A stretch of DNA of 64,000 bases from Macrostomum lignano (Eukaryota), in assembly GCA_002269645.1 (NCBI GenBank), contig NIVC01000592.1, positions 186,001 to 250,000 on the forward strand, given 5' to 3'. The first letter of the stretch is position 1; each line of letters starts with the position of its first letter. Of the stretch, positions 9,661 to 44,585 are shown in pieces. A program made the position numbers and the translations under genes. A model generated the notes under the pieces. The model made no database searches. It saw only the letters and a program-made list of their open reading frames with translations, and was not told the origin of the DNA.

Positions 9661-10400
9661 GATGCAGTGCTGTGTACTGAGATGCAGTGCTGTGTATTGA
9701 GATGCAGAGCTGTGTACTGAGATGCAGAGCTGTGTACTGAGATGCAGTGCTGTGTACTGAGATGCAGTGTTGTGTATTGAGATGCAGTGTTGTGTATTGA
9801 GATGCAGTGCTGTGTACTGAGATGCAGTGCTGTGTACTGAGATGCAGTGCTGTGTACTGAGATGCAGTGCTGTGTACTGAGATGCAGTGCTGTGTACTGA
9901 GATGCAGTGCTGTGTACTGAGATGCAGTGCTGTGTACTGAGATGCAGTGCTGTGTACTGAGATGCAGTGCTGTGTACTGAGATGCAGTGCTGTGTACTGA
10001 GATGCAGTGCTGTGTACTGAGATGCAGTGCTGTGTATTGAGATGCAGTGCTGTGTACTGAGATGCAGTGCTGTGTACTGAGATGCAGTGCTGTGTACTGA
10101 GATGCAGTGCTGTGTACTGAGATGCAGTGCTGTGTACTGAGATGCAGTGCTGTGTACTGAGATGCAGTGCTGTGTATTGAGATGCAGTGCTGTGTACTGA
10201 GATGCAGTGCTGTGTACTGAGATGCAGTGCTGTGTACTGAGATGCAGTGCTGTGTACTGAGATGCAGTGCTGTGTACTGAGATGCAGTGCTGTGTATTGA
10301 GATGCAGTGCTGTGTACTGAGATGCAGTGCTGTGTACTGAGATGCAGTGCTGTGTATTAAGATTTAGTGCTTTGTACTGAGATGCAGTGCTGTGTACTGA
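9661..10400 (+). repeat. 20-bp minisatellite (GATGCAGTGCTGTGTACTGA)n, left arm
   Basis: ~37 units. Confidence 0.97.
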
Positions 10401-11687
10401 GATTAAACGAGACTGAGACTGTGAAATGAAACTGACTGATGCCGTATGAGGCTGTGTGATGCTGTGTGAGTCTGTCCTCAGCTGAACTCAGCTTGCTTGT
10501 CACCTTGATTCCACCTGAGCCTTTAACCCTAGCCGCAACGGAGCTGAACAAATAAACAACTGCGGTCGCACTGGGGTGTCTCATGCCGCAGGCAGGCCGT
10601 TTAGCACTGCACTGGGGCAGTCAGGGACAGAACTGTTTACAAACGTATTCACCTGTTGAGTTTCAATTACTTTTTTTGACTCGTGCTCACATTGACTCAG
10701 AAAGTCTTCACAGGCAACTCTAATTCCTTGTTGCCGGGCAACAATTTAGTGGAAATTCAGCAGCCGCTGAAATTGCAGACTGAATTCCCGCAGCCTGGCG
10801 CACGGAAACCAAATGTTTAGTGCAGCTTATAGTTTTCCTGCATTTCCACCCCCTCCCGGAAGATAATTTCCAAGTCGCAAAAGCAGCGACAGCTGACATT
10901 TTTCTTCTTCCTCTGCTTTCGCTTAAACTTTGGTCTTTTGTGCAGAAGCAAATCCTGCAGTGTTGGATGATGGGGGATTTCCTTTGAACACGGAAGGAAA
11001 AAACCGGTGGGCTGGAGGTGCCTGCCGGCCCTGCTCAGGCGGCAGCTGTCGCCGGGGCTCTCGGGTCGGGGGGGGGGTTTATCGGGCAGCCTCCGCTCGG
11101 CAACCAGAGGAGGAGGAGGAGGCAGCGGAGCCGATGGGGACACGAGAGCCTTAATGACCCTCTTAGATTCCGCATTCCTCAAGCGGCAGCTGCGGCTCTC
11201 TTGACGCCCCGGACGGCCCTTGGATGAGGAACCAGCGGCAGCTGACGCCCGCCCGGCGCATGGCAGCTGCGCCTGGACCAAAGGTTTTTTCTTTCTCGAA
11301 GCTTCAGCATCTTTCATCTTCCATTTCGGCTGATCCTGCGGAAGAGGCAGGCAGGCTGGGGAAGGTCTTTGGAGCCCCGTCCGAGCCGCGTGCAATTTAA
11401 CTGTTCAATGTTTCTGGCGCACAAAACTTTTGCAGATTCTGTCTCTGACACGGGGGATCGGGAATATAAAAGGAGGCGCATGGAAGATGATTTTTGTACG
11501 AGTGTAGCTCCCGATATTTTTGCCTTTAGAGTTGTCGAGATGTCGCAAACTCCAAACAAGTCTTGGGAGTTTTGGCTGCTTTGCCAGCTTCAGTCTGCTG
11601 CAGTCTTATTCATCTCTTCATCAGCATCTGATCCTCTGCATTTCTCTAATCATTAACTCCGTCTAAACTTCAGAGCCTTGCTCAGGT

Positions 11688-22408: not shown

Positions 22409-34695
<12,287 letters not shown>

Positions 34696-35564: not shown

Positions 35565-36092
<528 letters not shown>

Positions 36093-36754
36093 AGCTAGCA
36101 AGTCTCTGCTAGCAAGTCTTCAGTCGGCATTATGGAAGCAGTTTGCCGGCTTACTCAAACTTGGACTCGCAGTTACACAGATCTTATCGCTTCCTTGTAT
36201 TTTGAGTTTTTGGCCAGTCCATCACTGCGTAAGCCTTCATTGCTCAGCTCAGTATAATTAATTCTCTTCTATCTATTTATATTCGAAGTATATTTTTATC
36301 CCGAGTTTTCATTTATTCGAACTGGTTTATCGCAGCTTATATCTGTCCGAATAGTTGATTGATAGAAATTGAAAAATTTCAATAATAATAATAATAATAA
36401 TGACACCGAACTTCGGTTTGTCCTGTTAACCGATATTATACGGGACGGGAAATTGTTAGTTATCGATTATTAGAGCTGGATCGCTGACTTTATTGCTTAA
36501 TTTTCTGTTTTTAATAAGAACCAGACTAATGTTTTTAGTTAGCTCATGTTGAGTAGGTTTTGGTTGTCAAGATAGCAAACTGCTGTAATTGAATAAGTAG
36601 AGACTTGTAACTTAGTCTTCGGAACTTCCGATAGTGCATTTGTACTTTACAAAGTTAACCTGCACGAAAATTACTAATAGATGTTTGAACTTTTTATAAG
36701 ATAATTTTTGCATTAAAAATGTTTTCTATCGTAAGATTTTTCCACTACGAGAGT

Positions 36755-36890
36755 ACTTCTTAAGGGCGCGAGTACTTTCTAAGTACGCGAGTACTTTTTA
36801 AGTGCGCGCCTACTTTCAAGTGCGCGAGTACTTTTTAAGTGCGCGCATACTTTTAAGTGTGCGAGTACTTTTTAAGTACGCGAATACTTT
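36755..36890. repeat. ~19-bp array (GCGCGAGTACTTTTTAAGT)n upstream of the periphilin-like gene
   Basis: ~7 units. Confidence 0.85.
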
Positions 36891-37006
36891 TGTTTAATGC
36901 ACACAAACTTAAGAGAAGCAGCTTATAATAACGGTATCAGTGTACTTTTATTGATTGCTGCAAACCACCCCATGCCCGTGCCAGAGGCAGCCAGCAGCCA
37001 TTGGCC

Positions 37007-38529
37007 ATGAACGACGCCGTAGACCCGGCGCTGGTCGCGCCGTCCCGTCACTGCCTGTACATCCGGGGCCTGCCGTCGCGCATCAAAGCCGACGAAGTTC
37101 GTCGCTACTTTATCGACAAAGAGGCCGACTGTTCCATCGATTTTTTCTCCTACACGGGCAGCCAGGCTGCGCTGAACATCGCCCTGCGATTCGATTCTCA
37201 CGAAGTTGCCAAGCAGATCATGCGCCGGTACAATGAGTCCGGCCTGCTCGGCTGCAAAGTCAGCATAGTCTGGTTCAAGGACATGATCCGCGCCCGGCAG
37301 CGGGTCCGGGCCGACCCGCAGCTGAGGGCTCGAGTTCAGCGGGCGCAGGAGGGCCGCGGACTCTCCGGCTCCCGGTCGCCGCCGCCCGCGCCTGGCTGGC
37401 GATTCGGACAGCAGGTGCGCGCCGACTCCAGCTTGGGGCCTCAGCCACCCTTGCCTCTTGTATTGTCTCACCTGTCTCTTTCCTGTCCCTCACCTGTCTC
37501 TTGCCTGTCCCTCACCTGTCTCTTGCCTGTCCCTCACCTGTCTTTTGCCTGTCCCTTGCCTGTCCCTTGCCTATCCCTTGCCTGTCTTTTGCCTGTCCCT
37601 CACCTGTCTCTTTCCTGTCCCTCACCTGTCTCTTTCCTGTCCCTCACCTGTCTCTTGTCTATCTCTCCCCTGTCCTTCACTTGTCTCTCACCTGTTCCTC
37701 ATTTTCCTTATAATACAATTGAGCAGTGACCTCAGTCCCTCCCTGTTGTCATTCTCCTATCTACAGCTGCACTACACGCGCCCACTGCAAAGTAATCCAG
37801 TGCCTCGTGTACCTCTATCCAACAAGACTCTCACATGCCTTCCGATCCCCCTCACCCGCTAAGCAGAACCGCAGTCGGTCTGGCAGCCAGCGCCGCCGCA
37901 GTCGCAGCCGCAGCCCGACCAGCCGCAGCCGCAGCCCCAGCAGGAGCAGCAGCACTCGAAGCGCCGCCCGTCGGGGCCCGCGCAGCCCGCCAGAGGAGGA
38001 CGAGGAGGCCGCGGCGACGTCAGCATCAGCGGCAAACAACGGCATCGACAATTCGAATGGCGGCGTCGAGCCCCGGCGGCTGGGACCGAGGTCTCCGCCA
38101 TCGCCGCCGCCCGTGTCTTCTCCGCCGCCTCCGCCTCCACCGTCGCCGCCGCCGCCAACAACATCGGCTCGGCCTTCGACATCGTCCTTGGCAACGCCGC
38201 TTCAGCCGCCGTCGTTGCCGCAGATGTCGCAGCCGCCGTTTTGCGACGCCGACAATCACGGCGTTAGCGCCGATGCCGGCGACGGCATCCTGCGTCTGGT
38301 GCGCGCCAAGAAGGCCGAATTGGAGCGAGCCTACAGGCAGGACTGCGACACCTTCGCTGTGGTGGCCAAAGTGCTGGTTAGCAAGAATTCCAGCTTGGAA
38401 GGCCCGGTGCGCGACGCTCTGCGCGAAGCTCTGCGCGACATTGGGCAGCACTGCGTGGAGGAGTTGCGCGAGTTCGCCCGCACTCTGGCCATCGCTCAGC
38501 AGCAGCGCCAGCCGGCTGGACAGCGATGA
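37007..38529 (+). CDS. PPHLN1: RRM + RS/Pro-rich + periphilin-like C-terminal domain protein, 2 exons, ~356 aa
   Basis: Exons 37007-37414 and 37867(or 37864)-38529, phase 0. N-terminal RRM-like fold (CLYIRGLPSRIKADEVRRYF..IALRF..AKQIMRRYN..LLGCKVSIVW), RS repeats, and C-terminal ELERAYRQDCDTFAVVAKVLVSKNSSLE..ALREALRDIGQHCVEELREF matching the periphilin-1 C-terminal domain as I recall it. Confidence 0.85.
37450..37700. repeat. 22-bp pyrimidine-rich array, periphilin-like intron
   Basis: CCTGTCTCTTGCCTGTCCCTCA variants. Confidence 0.9.
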
Positions 38530-39404: not shown

Positions 39405-39975
39405 CGTTGACACCCATCTCTGACTCCCATCTCTGACTCCCATCTCTGACTCCCATCTCTGACACCCATCTCTGACACACATCTCTGACTCCCATCTCTG
39501 ACACCCATCTCTGACACCCATCTCTGACTCCCATCTCTGACACCGATCTCTGACACCCATCTCTGACTCCCATCTCTGACTCCGATCTCTGACACCGATC
39601 TCTGACTCCCATTTCTGACACCCATCTCTGACACCCATCTCTGACTCCCATCTCTGACACCCATCTCTGACTCCCATCTCTGACACCCATCTCTGACTCC
39701 CATCTCTGACACCCATCTCTTACTCCCATCTCTGACACCGATCTCTGACTCCCATCTCTGACACCCATCTCTGACACCGATCTCTGACACCTATCTCTGA
39801 CTCCCATCTCTGACTCCGATCTCTGACACCGATCTCTGACTCCCATTTCTGACACCCATCTCTGACTCCCATCTCTGACACCCATCTCTGACTCATCTCT
39901 GACACCCATCTCTGACACCCATCTCTGACACCGATCTCTGACACCCATCTCTGACTCCCATCTCTGACACCCTTA
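39405..39975. repeat. 14-bp array (TCTGACWCCSATCTC variants)
   Basis: Direct reading. Confidence 0.95.
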
Positions 39976-40039: not shown

Positions 40040-40268
40040 TTCACTCATTCACCCATTCACCCATTCACTCATTCACTCATTCACCCATTTACTCATTCAC
40101 TTATTCACCCATTCACTCATTCACCCATTCACTCATTCACTCATTCACCCATTTACTCATTCACTCATTCACTCATTCACCCATTCACTCATTCACCCAT
40201 TCACTCATTCACTCATTCACCCATTTACTCATTCACTCATTCACTCATTCACCCATTTACTCATTCAC
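40040..40268. repeat. (CACTCATT/CACCCATT)n array
   Basis: Direct reading. Confidence 0.92.
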
Positions 40269-41554: not shown

Positions 41555-44500
41555 GCAATTCTAGCGCTGCTGCACGAGCTCAGGGACGCCTACAGCAATG
41601 TAGTGGCATTTGTCAGGGAGCTGGCGGTGCAGCTGGCCATGCTGCAGGCCGAGGAGAAGCGGGCCAAGCGAATCCTGGCCGTTGGAGGCCTCCTGCTGAT
41701 CAGCGTGTGCCTGCTGACTGTGTGGGGCCACCTGAACCCGAGCATGACCCTGGGCGCCTTCACCTGCCTGCTGCTGTTTGACCTGTGCTACATCGGCGTC
41801 GCCCTGGTCAGCCTCTGGGTTGAGCGGCGCCAGCGCTGTCTGGCCTACACGTTCGGCTACGAGCGATTCGAAGTGCTGGCGGTGTTCGCCTCCCTGATGC
41901 TGGCCATCCTCGGCGTGTTCTTCGTGCTGAAGGAGTGCGTGGAGCGGGCCTTCGAACCGCCCGATGTCACGCCTAGCGGCCTGGCGCTTGGCGGCCTCGT
42001 TGGACTCGTGGTGCATCTAGTGGCTGTGTACAGGTGTGTGGGTTTCTGTTTGTGGCTGTGTACAGGTGTGTGGGTTTCTGTTTGTGGCTGTGTACAGGTG
42101 TGTGGGTTTCTGTTTGTGGCTGTGTACAAGTGTGTGGGTTTCTGTTTGTGGCTGTGTACAGGTGTGTGGGTTTCTGTTTGTGGCTGTGTACAGGTGTGTG
42201 GGTTTCTGTTTGTGGCTGTGTACAGGTGTGTGGGTTTCTGTTTGTGGCTGTGTACAGGTGTGTGGGTTTCTGTTTGTGGCTGTGTACAGGTGTGTGGGTT
42301 TCTGTTTGTGGCTGTGTACAGGTGTGTGGGTTTCTGTTTGTGGCTGTGTACAGGTGTGTGGGTTTCTGTTTGTGGCTGTGTACAGGTGTGTGGGTTTCTG
42401 TTTGTGGCTGTGTACAGGTGTGTGGGTTTCTGTTTGTGGCTGTGTACAGGTGTGTGGGTTTCTGTTTGTGGCTGTGTACAGGTGTGTGGGTTTCTGTTTG
42501 TGGCTGTGTACAGGTGTGTGGGTTTCTGTTTGTGGCTGTGTACAGGTGTGTGGGTTTCTGTTTGTGGCTGTGTACAGGTGTGTGGGTTTCTGTTTGTGGC
42601 TGTGTACAGGTGTGTGGGTTTCTGTTTGTGGCTGTGTACAGGTGTGTGGGTTTCTGTTTGTGGCTGTGTACAGGTGTGTGGGTTTCTGTTTGTGGCTGTG
42701 TACAGGTGTGTGGGTTTCTGTTTGTGGCTGTGTACAGGTGTGTGGGTTTCTGTTTGTGGCTGTGTACAGGTGTGTGGGTTTCTGTTTGTGGCTGTGTACA
42801 GGTGTGTGGGTTTCTGTTTGTGGCTGTGTACAGGTGTGTGGGTTTCTGTTTGTGGCTGTGTACAGGTGTGTGGGTTTCTGTTTGTGGCTGTGTACAGGTG
42901 TGTGGGTTTCTGTTTGTGGCTGTGTACAGGTGTGTGGGTTTCTGTTTGTGGCTGTGTACAGGTGTGTGGGTTTCTGTTTGTGGCTGTGTACAGGTGTGTG
43001 GGTTTCTGTTTGTGGCTGTGTACAGGTGTGTGGGTTTCTGTTTGTGGCTGTGTACAGGTGTGTGGGTTTCTGTTTGTGGCTGTGTACAGGTGTGTGGGTT
43101 TCTGTTTGTGGCTGTGTACAAGGCTGTAACAGTTGCGTATACCTTCACAGCCGCAGATTCCATTTATTGCCCAACCGTTCCCCCCCCACTCCAGCGTGGA
43201 GAACCCGGCCTACAATCACGTGATCGACGCCAGCACGTCCAGCTGGCTGCAGGAGCACGTGACTGACATCAGCGAGAGCCTGTGCCATCACGTGCCGGGC
43301 CTGAGCAAGCTGCTGCTGCCCAGGCTGAACCCCCTGGCCCTGCTGGGGGTGTCCTCGGCCATGTGCCTGTTCCTGGCCAGCTGCCTACTCGACGCCTACC
43401 AGTCCTCGCTGGCCGACATCACAATGGCCGTACTGGCCGCCTTCGTTGTCGTGGTGACCATGGCGCCAATGGCCGCCTACTGCGGCAAGATTCTGCTGCA
43501 GAGCACCCCGGCTCACCTGGTCGGCCAGCTGGACAAGGCGCTCGGCGAGGCCGCCACGCTTGACGGGGTGCTGGAGCTTCGCAAGGAGCGCACCTGGCTG
43601 ACCGGCTTCGGACAGCTCAACGGCTGCCTGCAGGTGAGGCCTATTTGATGTATTTTGTGTAGTTTATTCATGACTGTGTACAGGTCTGTGTGTTCTGTTC
43701 GTGTCTGTGTACAGGTCTGTTTATTTTATTCGTGTCTGTGTACAGGTCTGTGTACTCTATTCGTGTCTGTGTACAGGTCTGTGTACTCTATTCGCGTCTG
43801 TGTACAGATCTGTGTACTCTATTCGTGTCTGTGTACAGGTCTGTGTACTCTATTCGTGTCTGTGTACAGGTCTGTGTACTCTATTCGCGTCTGTGTACAG
43901 ATCTGTGTACTCTATTCGTGTCTGTGTACAGGTCTGTGTACTCTATTCGCGTCTGTGTACAGATCTGTGTACTCTATTCGTGTCTGTGTACAGGTCTGTG
44001 TACTCTATTCATGTCTGTGTACAGATAGGTACAGTGTATCCAATTAGTGACTGTCATTTTTCAGAAAATTTTTGCCATTTTTCGCCTATTTTCTGTTCGT
44101 AAAAATCTGCAAAAGCAGAGTAAATTCTAATCCCAACGTCCCAGGTTCGAGTCCGCCGCGACGCCTCCGAACAGCTTGTGCTGGCCCACGTGACCAACCG
44201 GCTGGCCCACCTGGTGCCCGGCCTCACAGTGCAGGTCTACAAAGATGACTGGAGCCGCGGCCTGCAGCCCTCCGCCAGCTGGGTGGCGCCCCGCTTCAAC
44301 CCGTTCGCCCCGCCCGCCGCCCCATCCGCAGCCGCCGCCTCCCACGCCGTCGCCCCAGCCTCCTCGGCTTCTTCATTTCTCGCCGGTTCTTCATCGCCAC
44401 ATCCGTCAGCAGCGTCGACCGCGGTGTCCGAGGCCAACCTGCCGGACCTGCTGCTGCCCGCCAGCTTCGCTCCGCCGAACCCCTTCACTAGCCACGCCGG

Positions 44501-44585
44501 GGTCAGCTTCATGCTGCCGCCGCCCCCGCCGCCTCCGCCGATGCCTCCGTCGACATCCAGTTCGACGTTTCATCAGCGCTACTAA
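41555..44585 (+). CDS. SLC30A6: Zinc transporter ZnT6 (CDF family), 3 exons found, ~450 aa; N-terminus uncertain
   Basis: Exons 41555-42033, 43195-43633, 44145-44585 (phases 2, 0). Motifs YTFGYERFEVLAVFAS, ASTSSWLQEHV, LLPRLNP, GKILLQSTPAHLVGQLDK, TLDGVLE, VRRDASEQLVLAHVTNRL, VQVYKDDW are ZnT6-type. The 5' end is an acceptor at 41554; the first in-frame ATG is 41639. Confidence 0.92.
42020..43120 (+). repeat. 32-bp array spanning the ZnT6 exon/intron 1 junction
   Basis: (GTGGCTGTGTACAG|GTGTGTGGGTTTCTGTTT)n, ~34 units. Confidence 0.98.
43672..44025. repeat. 31-bp array, ZnT6 intron 2
   Basis: (TGTGTACAGGTCTGTGTACTCTATTCGTGTC)n. Confidence 0.95.

Follow-up and report, generated by a model that had tools for sequence, protein, structure and literature searches.

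An RRM-fold domain and an RS tract precede the periphilin C-terminal domain in a Macrostomum lignano protein of a widespread family

Introduction

Periphilin ties the HUSH (human silencing hub) complex to its target RNA; how this RNA is recognized and how intron-containing genes are spared are open questions. As a HUSH subunit, periphilin binds TASOR physically (2:1) and is required for silencing based on H3K9me3. Here we describe a gene of the flatworm Macrostomum lignano located in a stretch of 64,000 nucleotides (nt), referred to as the window (GenBank assembly GCA_002269645.1, contig NIVC01000592.1, positions 186,001 to 250,000 of the forward strand; all positions given below are those of the window). 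A first-pass annotation, made from the DNA letters alone, had proposed that this gene (37007-38529) joins the C-terminal domain of periphilin to an RNA recognition motif (RRM) and to an arginine/serine (RS) tract.

Disorder is predicted for residues 20-291 of human periphilin-1, a region rich in Ser, Arg and Tyr. Low-complexity regions taken from RNA-binding proteins can take the place of its N-terminal domain, and the RNA-binding module is therefore exchangeable; according to the authors of the same study, there is no classical RRM in HUSH (PMC7544229). In the C-terminal domain, L326, L333 and I337 belong to the dimer interface and L356 contacts TASOR. Mutation of these residues abolishes the pull-down of TASOR, and silencing is reduced by the substitutions L326A and L333A/I337A and abolished by L356R (PMC7544229).

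A proposed analogue of periphilin is Tas3 of the Schizosaccharomyces pombe complex RITS (RNA-induced transcriptional silencing), which binds, during RNA-directed heterochromatin formation, the SPOC/PIN-containing scaffold Chp1, a protein likened to TASOR (PMC7532188).

Results and Discussion

Domain architecture of the encoded protein

The coding region and the domains assigned to its product, in amino acids (aa), were as follows; AF2 stands for AlphaFold2.

37007-38529, + strand: whole gene, coding; two exons, 356-aa product
37049-37270, + strand: RRM-fold core, aa 15-88 (AF2, Foldseek, alignment with the RRMs of U1A and SRSF1)
37274-37351, + strand: WFKD motif and two basic helices extending the RRM, aa 90-115 (AF2, family alignment)
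37867-37992, + strand: RS tract, aa 137-178, 42 aa (composition)
38089-38235, + strand: Pro-rich low-complexity linker, aa 211-259, 45% Pro (composition)
38293-38481, + strand: Periphilin_C domain, aa 279-341 (Pfam PF25234, homology to 6SWG, AF2 hairpin over aa 271-349)

The C-terminus matched the Pfam profile Periphilin_C (PF25234), whose gathering cut-off is 27 bits, with 80.2-83.7 bits; the E-value was 1.4e-22 with the full protein and 1.1e-23 when the domain was searched by itself. A phmmer search of the PDB yielded a single significant match, human periphilin-1 (6SWG chain A, E=2.9e-14 over aa 280-340), with 29 of 61 residues (48%) identical. The AF2 model of aa 270-356, with a predicted local distance difference test score (pLDDT) of 87.7, was a two-helix hairpin whose helices span model residues 2-40 and 42-80. 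Its sole Foldseek matches with E<0.01 were 6SWG_B and 6SWG_A, with template modelling (TM) scores of 0.80-0.83 and a root-mean-square deviation of 0.9 Å over 61 residues. The entry 6SWG is the TASOR-periphilin core complex, and both matched chains are periphilin. This model and that of the N-domain were each built on an alignment of two sequences. A Lge1-type family was rejected, as the Pfam search gave no Lge1 match even at E<=10.

These results identify the C-terminus as a bona fide, unambiguous Periphilin_C domain, in agreement with the first-pass annotation, and the human periphilin sequence given there agrees with 6SWG chain A at every aligned residue. The peptide quoted there, ELERAYRQDCDTFAVVAKVLVSKNSSLEGPVRDALREALRDIGQHCVEELREF, is indeed encoded (aa 287-339), but it had been placed at the end of exon 2, where in fact 17 residues follow it before the TGA.

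Residues L306, L313, V317 and L336 align with human L326, L333, I337 and L356, respectively, and the numbering maps exactly. The equivalents of L326, L333 and L356 are identical to the human residues, and I337 is replaced by Val (V317). In an alignment of 38 members of the family described below, the dimer and TASOR-contact positions were hydrophobic throughout. The domain is homologous to the TASOR-binding dimerization domain of human periphilin-1, with the interface residues tested in the human protein retained.

The AF2 model of the N-domain (pLDDT 83) showed a beta-alpha-beta-beta-alpha-beta arrangement followed by two helices. The order assigned by DSSP for the core was beta1 16-23, alpha1 28-37, beta2 42-50, beta3 55-62, alpha2 65-78 and beta4 86-88. 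All of the top 50 Foldseek matches in the PDB were RRMs (probability 0.98-1.00), among them those of raver1, ALY, Tra2-beta, La, Npl3, RBM7 and U2AF65. When the Macrostomum protein was searched alone, the Pfam profile RRM_1 (PF00076) remained below threshold (12.1-15.3 bits against a cut-off of 20.7, E=0.019). The N-domains of orthologues passed it: 35.0 bits for C. elegans, 26.1 for Clonorchis, 25.5 for Branchiostoma, 21.2 for Amphiura and 21.0 for Owenia. The RRM-like N-terminus proposed initially is borne out by these data: the modelled N-terminus adopts the RRM fold and, by profile search, is also homologous to the Pfam-positive RRMs of the orthologues.

Alignment with the RRMs of U1A and SRSF1 showed that the aromatic residue of the ribonucleoprotein motif RNP2 is retained (Y18) and that both canonical aromatics of RNP1 are missing, position 3 being N57 and position 5 A59. 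At position 3 most relatives have Phe or Tyr, but the two Macrostomum paralogues have Asn; at position 5 every member of the family has Ala. A 'WF.D.R' motif after beta4 is kept in at least 70% of the family members. The N-domain is a non-canonical RRM.

The RS tract contains 69% Arg+Ser and 16 RS/SR dipeptides. It is internal: an acidic stretch and the 45%-Pro tract lie C-terminal to it, and about 180 further residues follow the tract in all. RS/SR-rich linkers are common throughout the family. In the definition that Manley and Krainer reportedly gave in 2010, a classical serine/arginine-rich (SR) protein has one or more N-terminal RRMs and, at its C-terminus, an RS domain that is at least 50 aa long and has an RS content above 40%. 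Since the Macrostomum tract is short (42 aa) and internal, it is, on composition and position, SR-like, and the protein is SR-related at most and not a classical SR protein. The SR-type repeats of the first-pass annotation are thus present as a tract, but not as a classical SR domain.

Distribution of the architecture

With a profile of the N-domain, constructed from two Macrostomum sequences, 1.84 billion cluster representatives were searched exhaustively by HMMER. The profile matched 74 of these, and Periphilin_C was found in 39 of the 74 by Pfam and in 38 by local hidden Markov models (HMMs). Nearly all members identified with the local HMMs carried the RRM at the N-terminus, an RS/SR-rich linker, and Periphilin_C at the C-terminus.

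The architecture was found in the flatworms Clonorchis, Paragonimus, Protopolystoma and Dibothriocephalus; in many nematodes, including C. elegans (Y57G11C.9, UniProt Q9U203); in the nematomorph Gordionus; in the annelids Dimorphilus and Owenia; in the echinoderms Amphiura and Acanthaster; in the hemichordate Ptychodera flava ('periphilin-1-like', XP_070558571.1); and in Branchiostoma (XP_035675850.1). The layout of RRM, RS-rich linker and Periphilin_C therefore occurs in at least seven bilaterian phyla. Both domains scored above the curated Pfam thresholds in C. elegans, Branchiostoma, Amphiura, Owenia and Clonorchis; for Y57G11C.9 the scores were 35 bits for RRM_1 and 38 bits for Periphilin_C. 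A taxon name was obtained for 30 of the 74 matches, the others being placed by their nearest labelled neighbour, and the unnamed matches resembled flatworm, nematode, hemichordate or nematomorph members. None of the 74 resembled a vertebrate, arthropod or mollusc protein, in a search whose Macrostomum-only profile may miss divergent lineages.

The identity of the C-domain to that of human periphilin-1 was 52-59% for the RRM-bearing proteins of deuterostomes and annelids, 48% for Macrostomum and 23-41% for the fast-evolving nematodes. This gradient is the one expected for orthologues and fits orthology rather than domain shuffling. The layout is spread over Spiralia, Ecdysozoa, Ambulacraria and one cephalochordate, and the simplest reading is therefore bilaterian ancestry with loss of the RRM in vertebrate periphilin. 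As judged from these sequences, the RRM-RS-Periphilin_C form is probably ancestral to Bilateria and the common form among invertebrates.

The names given to these proteins in the databases are automatic ('hypothetical protein', 'RRM domain-containing protein', 'Periphilin-1 C-terminal domain-containing protein', 'periphilin-1-like'). By its own terms, the first-pass annotation would be refuted if the fusion were the common, already described invertebrate form with no silencing phenotype. This objection holds in part: the form is common, but our full-text literature search found no paper on an RRM-bearing periphilin or on the function or phenotype of any member, and in the literature searched Y57G11C.9 appeared in gene lists only. 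These findings identify the architecture as a widespread, undescribed form of periphilin, of which the Macrostomum gene is an ordinary member and not a Macrostomum novelty.

Possible function

The function that we favor, with a probability of about 0.5, is that of a nuclear, dimeric RNA-tethering adaptor which would recruit a TASOR-like partner. The RRM, the phosphorylatable RS tract, or both would engage nascent RNA or pre-mRNA, or else RS-domain proteins bound to RNA. The C-terminal hairpin would homodimerize and display a hydrophobic surface equivalent to the one which binds TASOR in human periphilin, and this surface would recruit a TASOR-like scaffold (DUF3715-SPOC-DomI), leading to co-transcriptional repression. 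Vertebrate periphilin would then be the derived form, in which the RRM was lost and the disordered, Arg/Ser/Tyr-rich RNA-binding region was kept.

We infer such a HUSH-like role from the family-wide conservation of the interface, from the existence of TASOR-like proteins in metazoans and from the modular nature of the human N-terminus. TASOR-like proteins have been reported throughout Metazoa, in a text which names no phyla and does not list flatworms (PMC10578480).

Several observations weigh against this role. Neither RNP1 aromatic is present in the RRM, and the whole family has Ala at position 5. For this reason it is doubtful that the beta-sheet binds RNA in the canonical way, and the RRM may be a protein-interaction module instead. 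The family is well retained in nematodes, and no nematode HUSH complex was described in the literature searched. Y57G11C.9 has been listed together with the SR genes rsp-5, rsp-6 and rsp-7 among producers of isoforms targeted by nonsense-mediated mRNA decay (NMD) (PMC5777819), and such isoforms are typical of splicing regulators. HUSH action is described in the literature as extending 'from fish to mammals'.

A serious competitor, to which we give a substantial chance although short of even, is that the protein is an SR-related RNA-processing factor, acting in splicing, export or surveillance, in which Periphilin_C is a mere dimerization or partner module with no part in HUSH-like chromatin silencing. 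The partnership with TASOR would then be a later use, in the vertebrate lineage, of an older RNA-protein adaptor. SR-related proteins have this layout, in which an RS tract comes after an N-terminal RRM, and some family members showed weak matches to the SR-25 splicing-associated family. The grouping of the C. elegans orthologue with rsp-5, rsp-6 and rsp-7 in NMD-regulated alternative splicing, and the retention of the family in nematodes, for which HUSH has not been described, point in the same direction. However, the residues used for TASOR contact and dimerization in human periphilin have been conserved family-wide over some 600 million years, which argues for a conserved partner surface. 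The reported occurrence of TASOR-like proteins across Metazoa also speaks against a purely RNA-processing role, as do the short RS tract (42 aa) and the RRM without RNP1 aromatics, both unlike those of classical SR proteins.

The listing of Y57G11C.9 (P0025) beside the rsp genes among NMD targets hints at autoregulation of the kind found for SR genes in the RRM-periphilin family.

The tethering role may be taken one step further, to an ancestral bilaterian periphilin which was SR-like, carried a folded RRM and tethered a TASOR-like silencing scaffold to nascent transcripts, the RRM being lost in vertebrates; this complete scenario we hold only tentatively and judge it rather unlikely as a whole. 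If it were true, the RRM/RS module would link HUSH-type repeat silencing directly to the splicing machinery and would offer an evolutionary handle on how HUSH distinguishes intronless from intron-containing transcripts, and HUSH-like silencing could be tested in C. elegans, through Y57G11C.9, and in M. lignano. Given the occurrence of the RRM and RS-rich tract in at least seven invertebrate phyla, the disordered N-terminus of the vertebrate protein would be the derived state, and the invertebrate RRM offers a folded, assayable candidate for RNA binding. Both C. elegans and M. lignano are genetically tractable, and the possibility of a HUSH-like pathway older than vertebrates could be addressed in them. 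Were the protein only an SR-related splicing factor, the periphilin C-domain would still be re-dated, as an old dimerization or partner module later recruited to HUSH.

Gene structure and genomic context

The gene model comprised the following parts.

36977-37006, + strand: 5' leader within the annotated 5'-partial coding sequence (CDS) of BOX15_Mlig022724g1; in the annotated protein RARGSQQPLA precedes the Met
37007-37414, + strand: exon 1, aa 1-136, with the start codon, the RRM-fold domain and its C-terminal helices; junction identical to that of the annotated protein
37415-37866, + strand: intron, 452 nt, GT..AG, phase 0, with a 22-nt minisatellite inside and a tandem AAG/CAG acceptor
37867-38529, + strand: exon 2, aa 137-356 and TGA (open reading frame (ORF) and annotated protein)

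The start codon at 37007 is the first in-frame ATG downstream of an in-frame stop at 36929-31. The donor of exon 1 is CAG/GTGCGC and the acceptor of the intron is ...CTAAGCAG/AAC (slashes mark the junctions); exon 2 ends with TGA at 38527-38529. The exons are GC-rich (65-69% GC), in a repeat-rich window with a mean of 49% GC and local values of 25-40%.

A protein search returned BOX15_Mlig022724g1 ('hypothetical protein', partial; Macrostomum lignano; P0001) with 100% identity. By sequence placement, this annotated gene (10001-11553 of the locus) corresponds to 36977-38529 of the window, and its splice junction, ..GWRFGQQ/NRSRSG.., is identical to ours. The GenBank annotation of GCA_002269645.1 has RNA-seq as its only source: transcripts were assembled both de novo and with guidance from the genome, and ORFs were called by TransDecoder (PMC5730564). 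The exon join is therefore transcript-based, the transcript support being that of the annotation source. The Macrostomum lignano gene at this locus is expressed and has two exons, joined as the first-pass annotation had assumed.

Two features of the transcript ends and junctions were observed. A NAGNAG motif lies at the end of the intron (37860-37866, AAG/CAG): splicing at the upstream AG would insert a single in-frame Gln, and the annotated protein uses the downstream AG. An out-of-frame ATG is present at 36972-36974, 35 nt 5' of the start codon; the annotated 5'-partial CDS starts right after it, at 36977, and the transcript may begin 3' of that ATG.

It is very improbable that the gene model is a chimera, in which two adjacent genes or ORFs were falsely merged over a repeat-filled gap. 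The intron is indeed packed with the 22-nt minisatellite, and at least one model of the gene in the assembly, P0013, is fused or frameshifted. However, the junction is a canonical, phase-0 GT-AG junction which the annotation derived only from RNA-seq has in identical form. Exon 2 lacks an in-frame ATG until aa 256 and therefore cannot stand alone as a gene. The same N-to-C order of the modules is found in the paralogue P0002 and in about 36 orthologue clusters. The chimeric model was rejected on the canonical junction, the RNA-seq-based annotation and the family-wide order of modules.

That the protein is a gene fusion specific to flatworms or to Macrostomum, as the RRM-less human periphilin and a word-based search with the full protein, which gave only two Macrostomum proteins, could suggest, is hardly credible and was rejected, since the N-domain profile, in the exhaustive HMMER search, recovered this architecture from nematodes, a nematomorph, annelids, echinoderms, a hemichordate and amphioxus. 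The alternative 'ancestral or lineage-specific' of the first-pass annotation is thereby narrowed: the ancestral origin is favored and the lineage-specific one refuted. In the word-indexed protein search, the isolated N-domain and the isolated C-domain gave no matches, not even to the query protein itself. The poor performance of the full-length word search is probably due to the low-complexity linker, which would dominate the word matches.

The paralogue BOX15_Mlig019216g2 (P0002) shows 47-52% identity in both domains, the same module order and a different intron pattern. The window matched contig NIVC01000592.1 with 100% identity. A second copy of the gene studied here was found on NIVC01001762.1, 99.5% identical over the gene region, and each of the two paralogues occurs twice in the redundant assembly. 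Such duplicate copies fit the redundancy and the hidden polyploidy known from M. lignano (PMC5730564).

The gene order in the window is a Na+/H+ exchanger gene (26977-34695), the RRM-periphilin gene, a cation-efflux gene (41561-44585) and a poly-ADP-ribose glycohydrolase (PARG) gene (44974 onward). A PARG gene is also located a few kb downstream of P0002, on the same strand (order Vma12, paralogue, PARG). The presence of PARG downstream of both paralogues places them in duplicated segments, of which the assembly holds two copies each.

P0013, a 784-aa database model from outside the window, appears to be a fusion of part of another protein with the RRM-periphilin gene. The RRM match lies at aa 409-474, and the C-domain is partly in the +1 frame (..WKAGATLCAKLCATLGST..) before the model returns to CVEELREFA. 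P0013 probably derives from the same locus or an allelic one, either as a copy with a frameshift or as a mis-assembled model.

Tandem repeats surround and enter the gene. The minisatellite of the intron occupies 37467-37701. A 19-nt repeat, GAGTACTTTTTAAGTGCGC, is present in 7.5 copies at 36751-36891, about 115 nt 5' of the start codon, in what is likely the promoter region. Simple arrays are located at 35567-36089 ((TCTG)x131), 39408-39972 (13-nt unit x44) and 40040-40268 (8-nt unit x29). The flanking arrays yield many spurious long ORFs on both strands.

Comparison with known systems

Human periphilin-1 (PPHLN1), the RNA-binding subunit of HUSH, shares with the Macrostomum protein the homologous C-terminal hairpin (48% identity over 61 aa) and the position of this domain at the C-terminus, behind a long disordered Arg/Ser-rich region. 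It differs in that a folded RNA-binding domain is lacking and the first 127 residues form a disordered, Arg/Tyr-rich, self-associating region. An N-terminus of this type is absent from the Macrostomum protein, where a modelled RRM fold is followed by an RS and not an Arg/Tyr tract. TASOR binding and silencing have been demonstrated for human periphilin-1, whereas the Macrostomum protein is known here from sequence and models.

Tas3 of S. pombe resembles periphilin in being small and mostly disordered with a C-terminal self-associating helical module (PMC7532188). Unlike the Macrostomum protein, it lacks both an RRM and an RS tract and has a connection to Argonaute; we detected no homology between the two sequences, and the likeness is architectural only.

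The classical SR proteins (SRSF1-12) and SR-related proteins have in common with the Macrostomum protein an N-terminal RRM followed by an Arg/Ser repeat tract, and the C. elegans orthologue resembles the rsp genes in its NMD-coupled alternative splicing. The differences are the RS tract of 42 aa in an internal position, the degenerate RNP1 and the Periphilin_C domain, which is unknown in SR proteins.

The closest resemblance is to the orthologues Y57G11C.9 of C. elegans, XP_070558571.1 of Ptychodera and XP_035675850.1 of Branchiostoma. Compared with these, the Macrostomum protein is shorter (356 aa against 475-760) and its RRM is more degenerate, with Asn at RNP1 position 3 and a score below the Pfam threshold. 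All of them share three modules: an N-terminal RRM belonging to one subfamily, a linker rich in RS, and Periphilin_C at the C-terminus.

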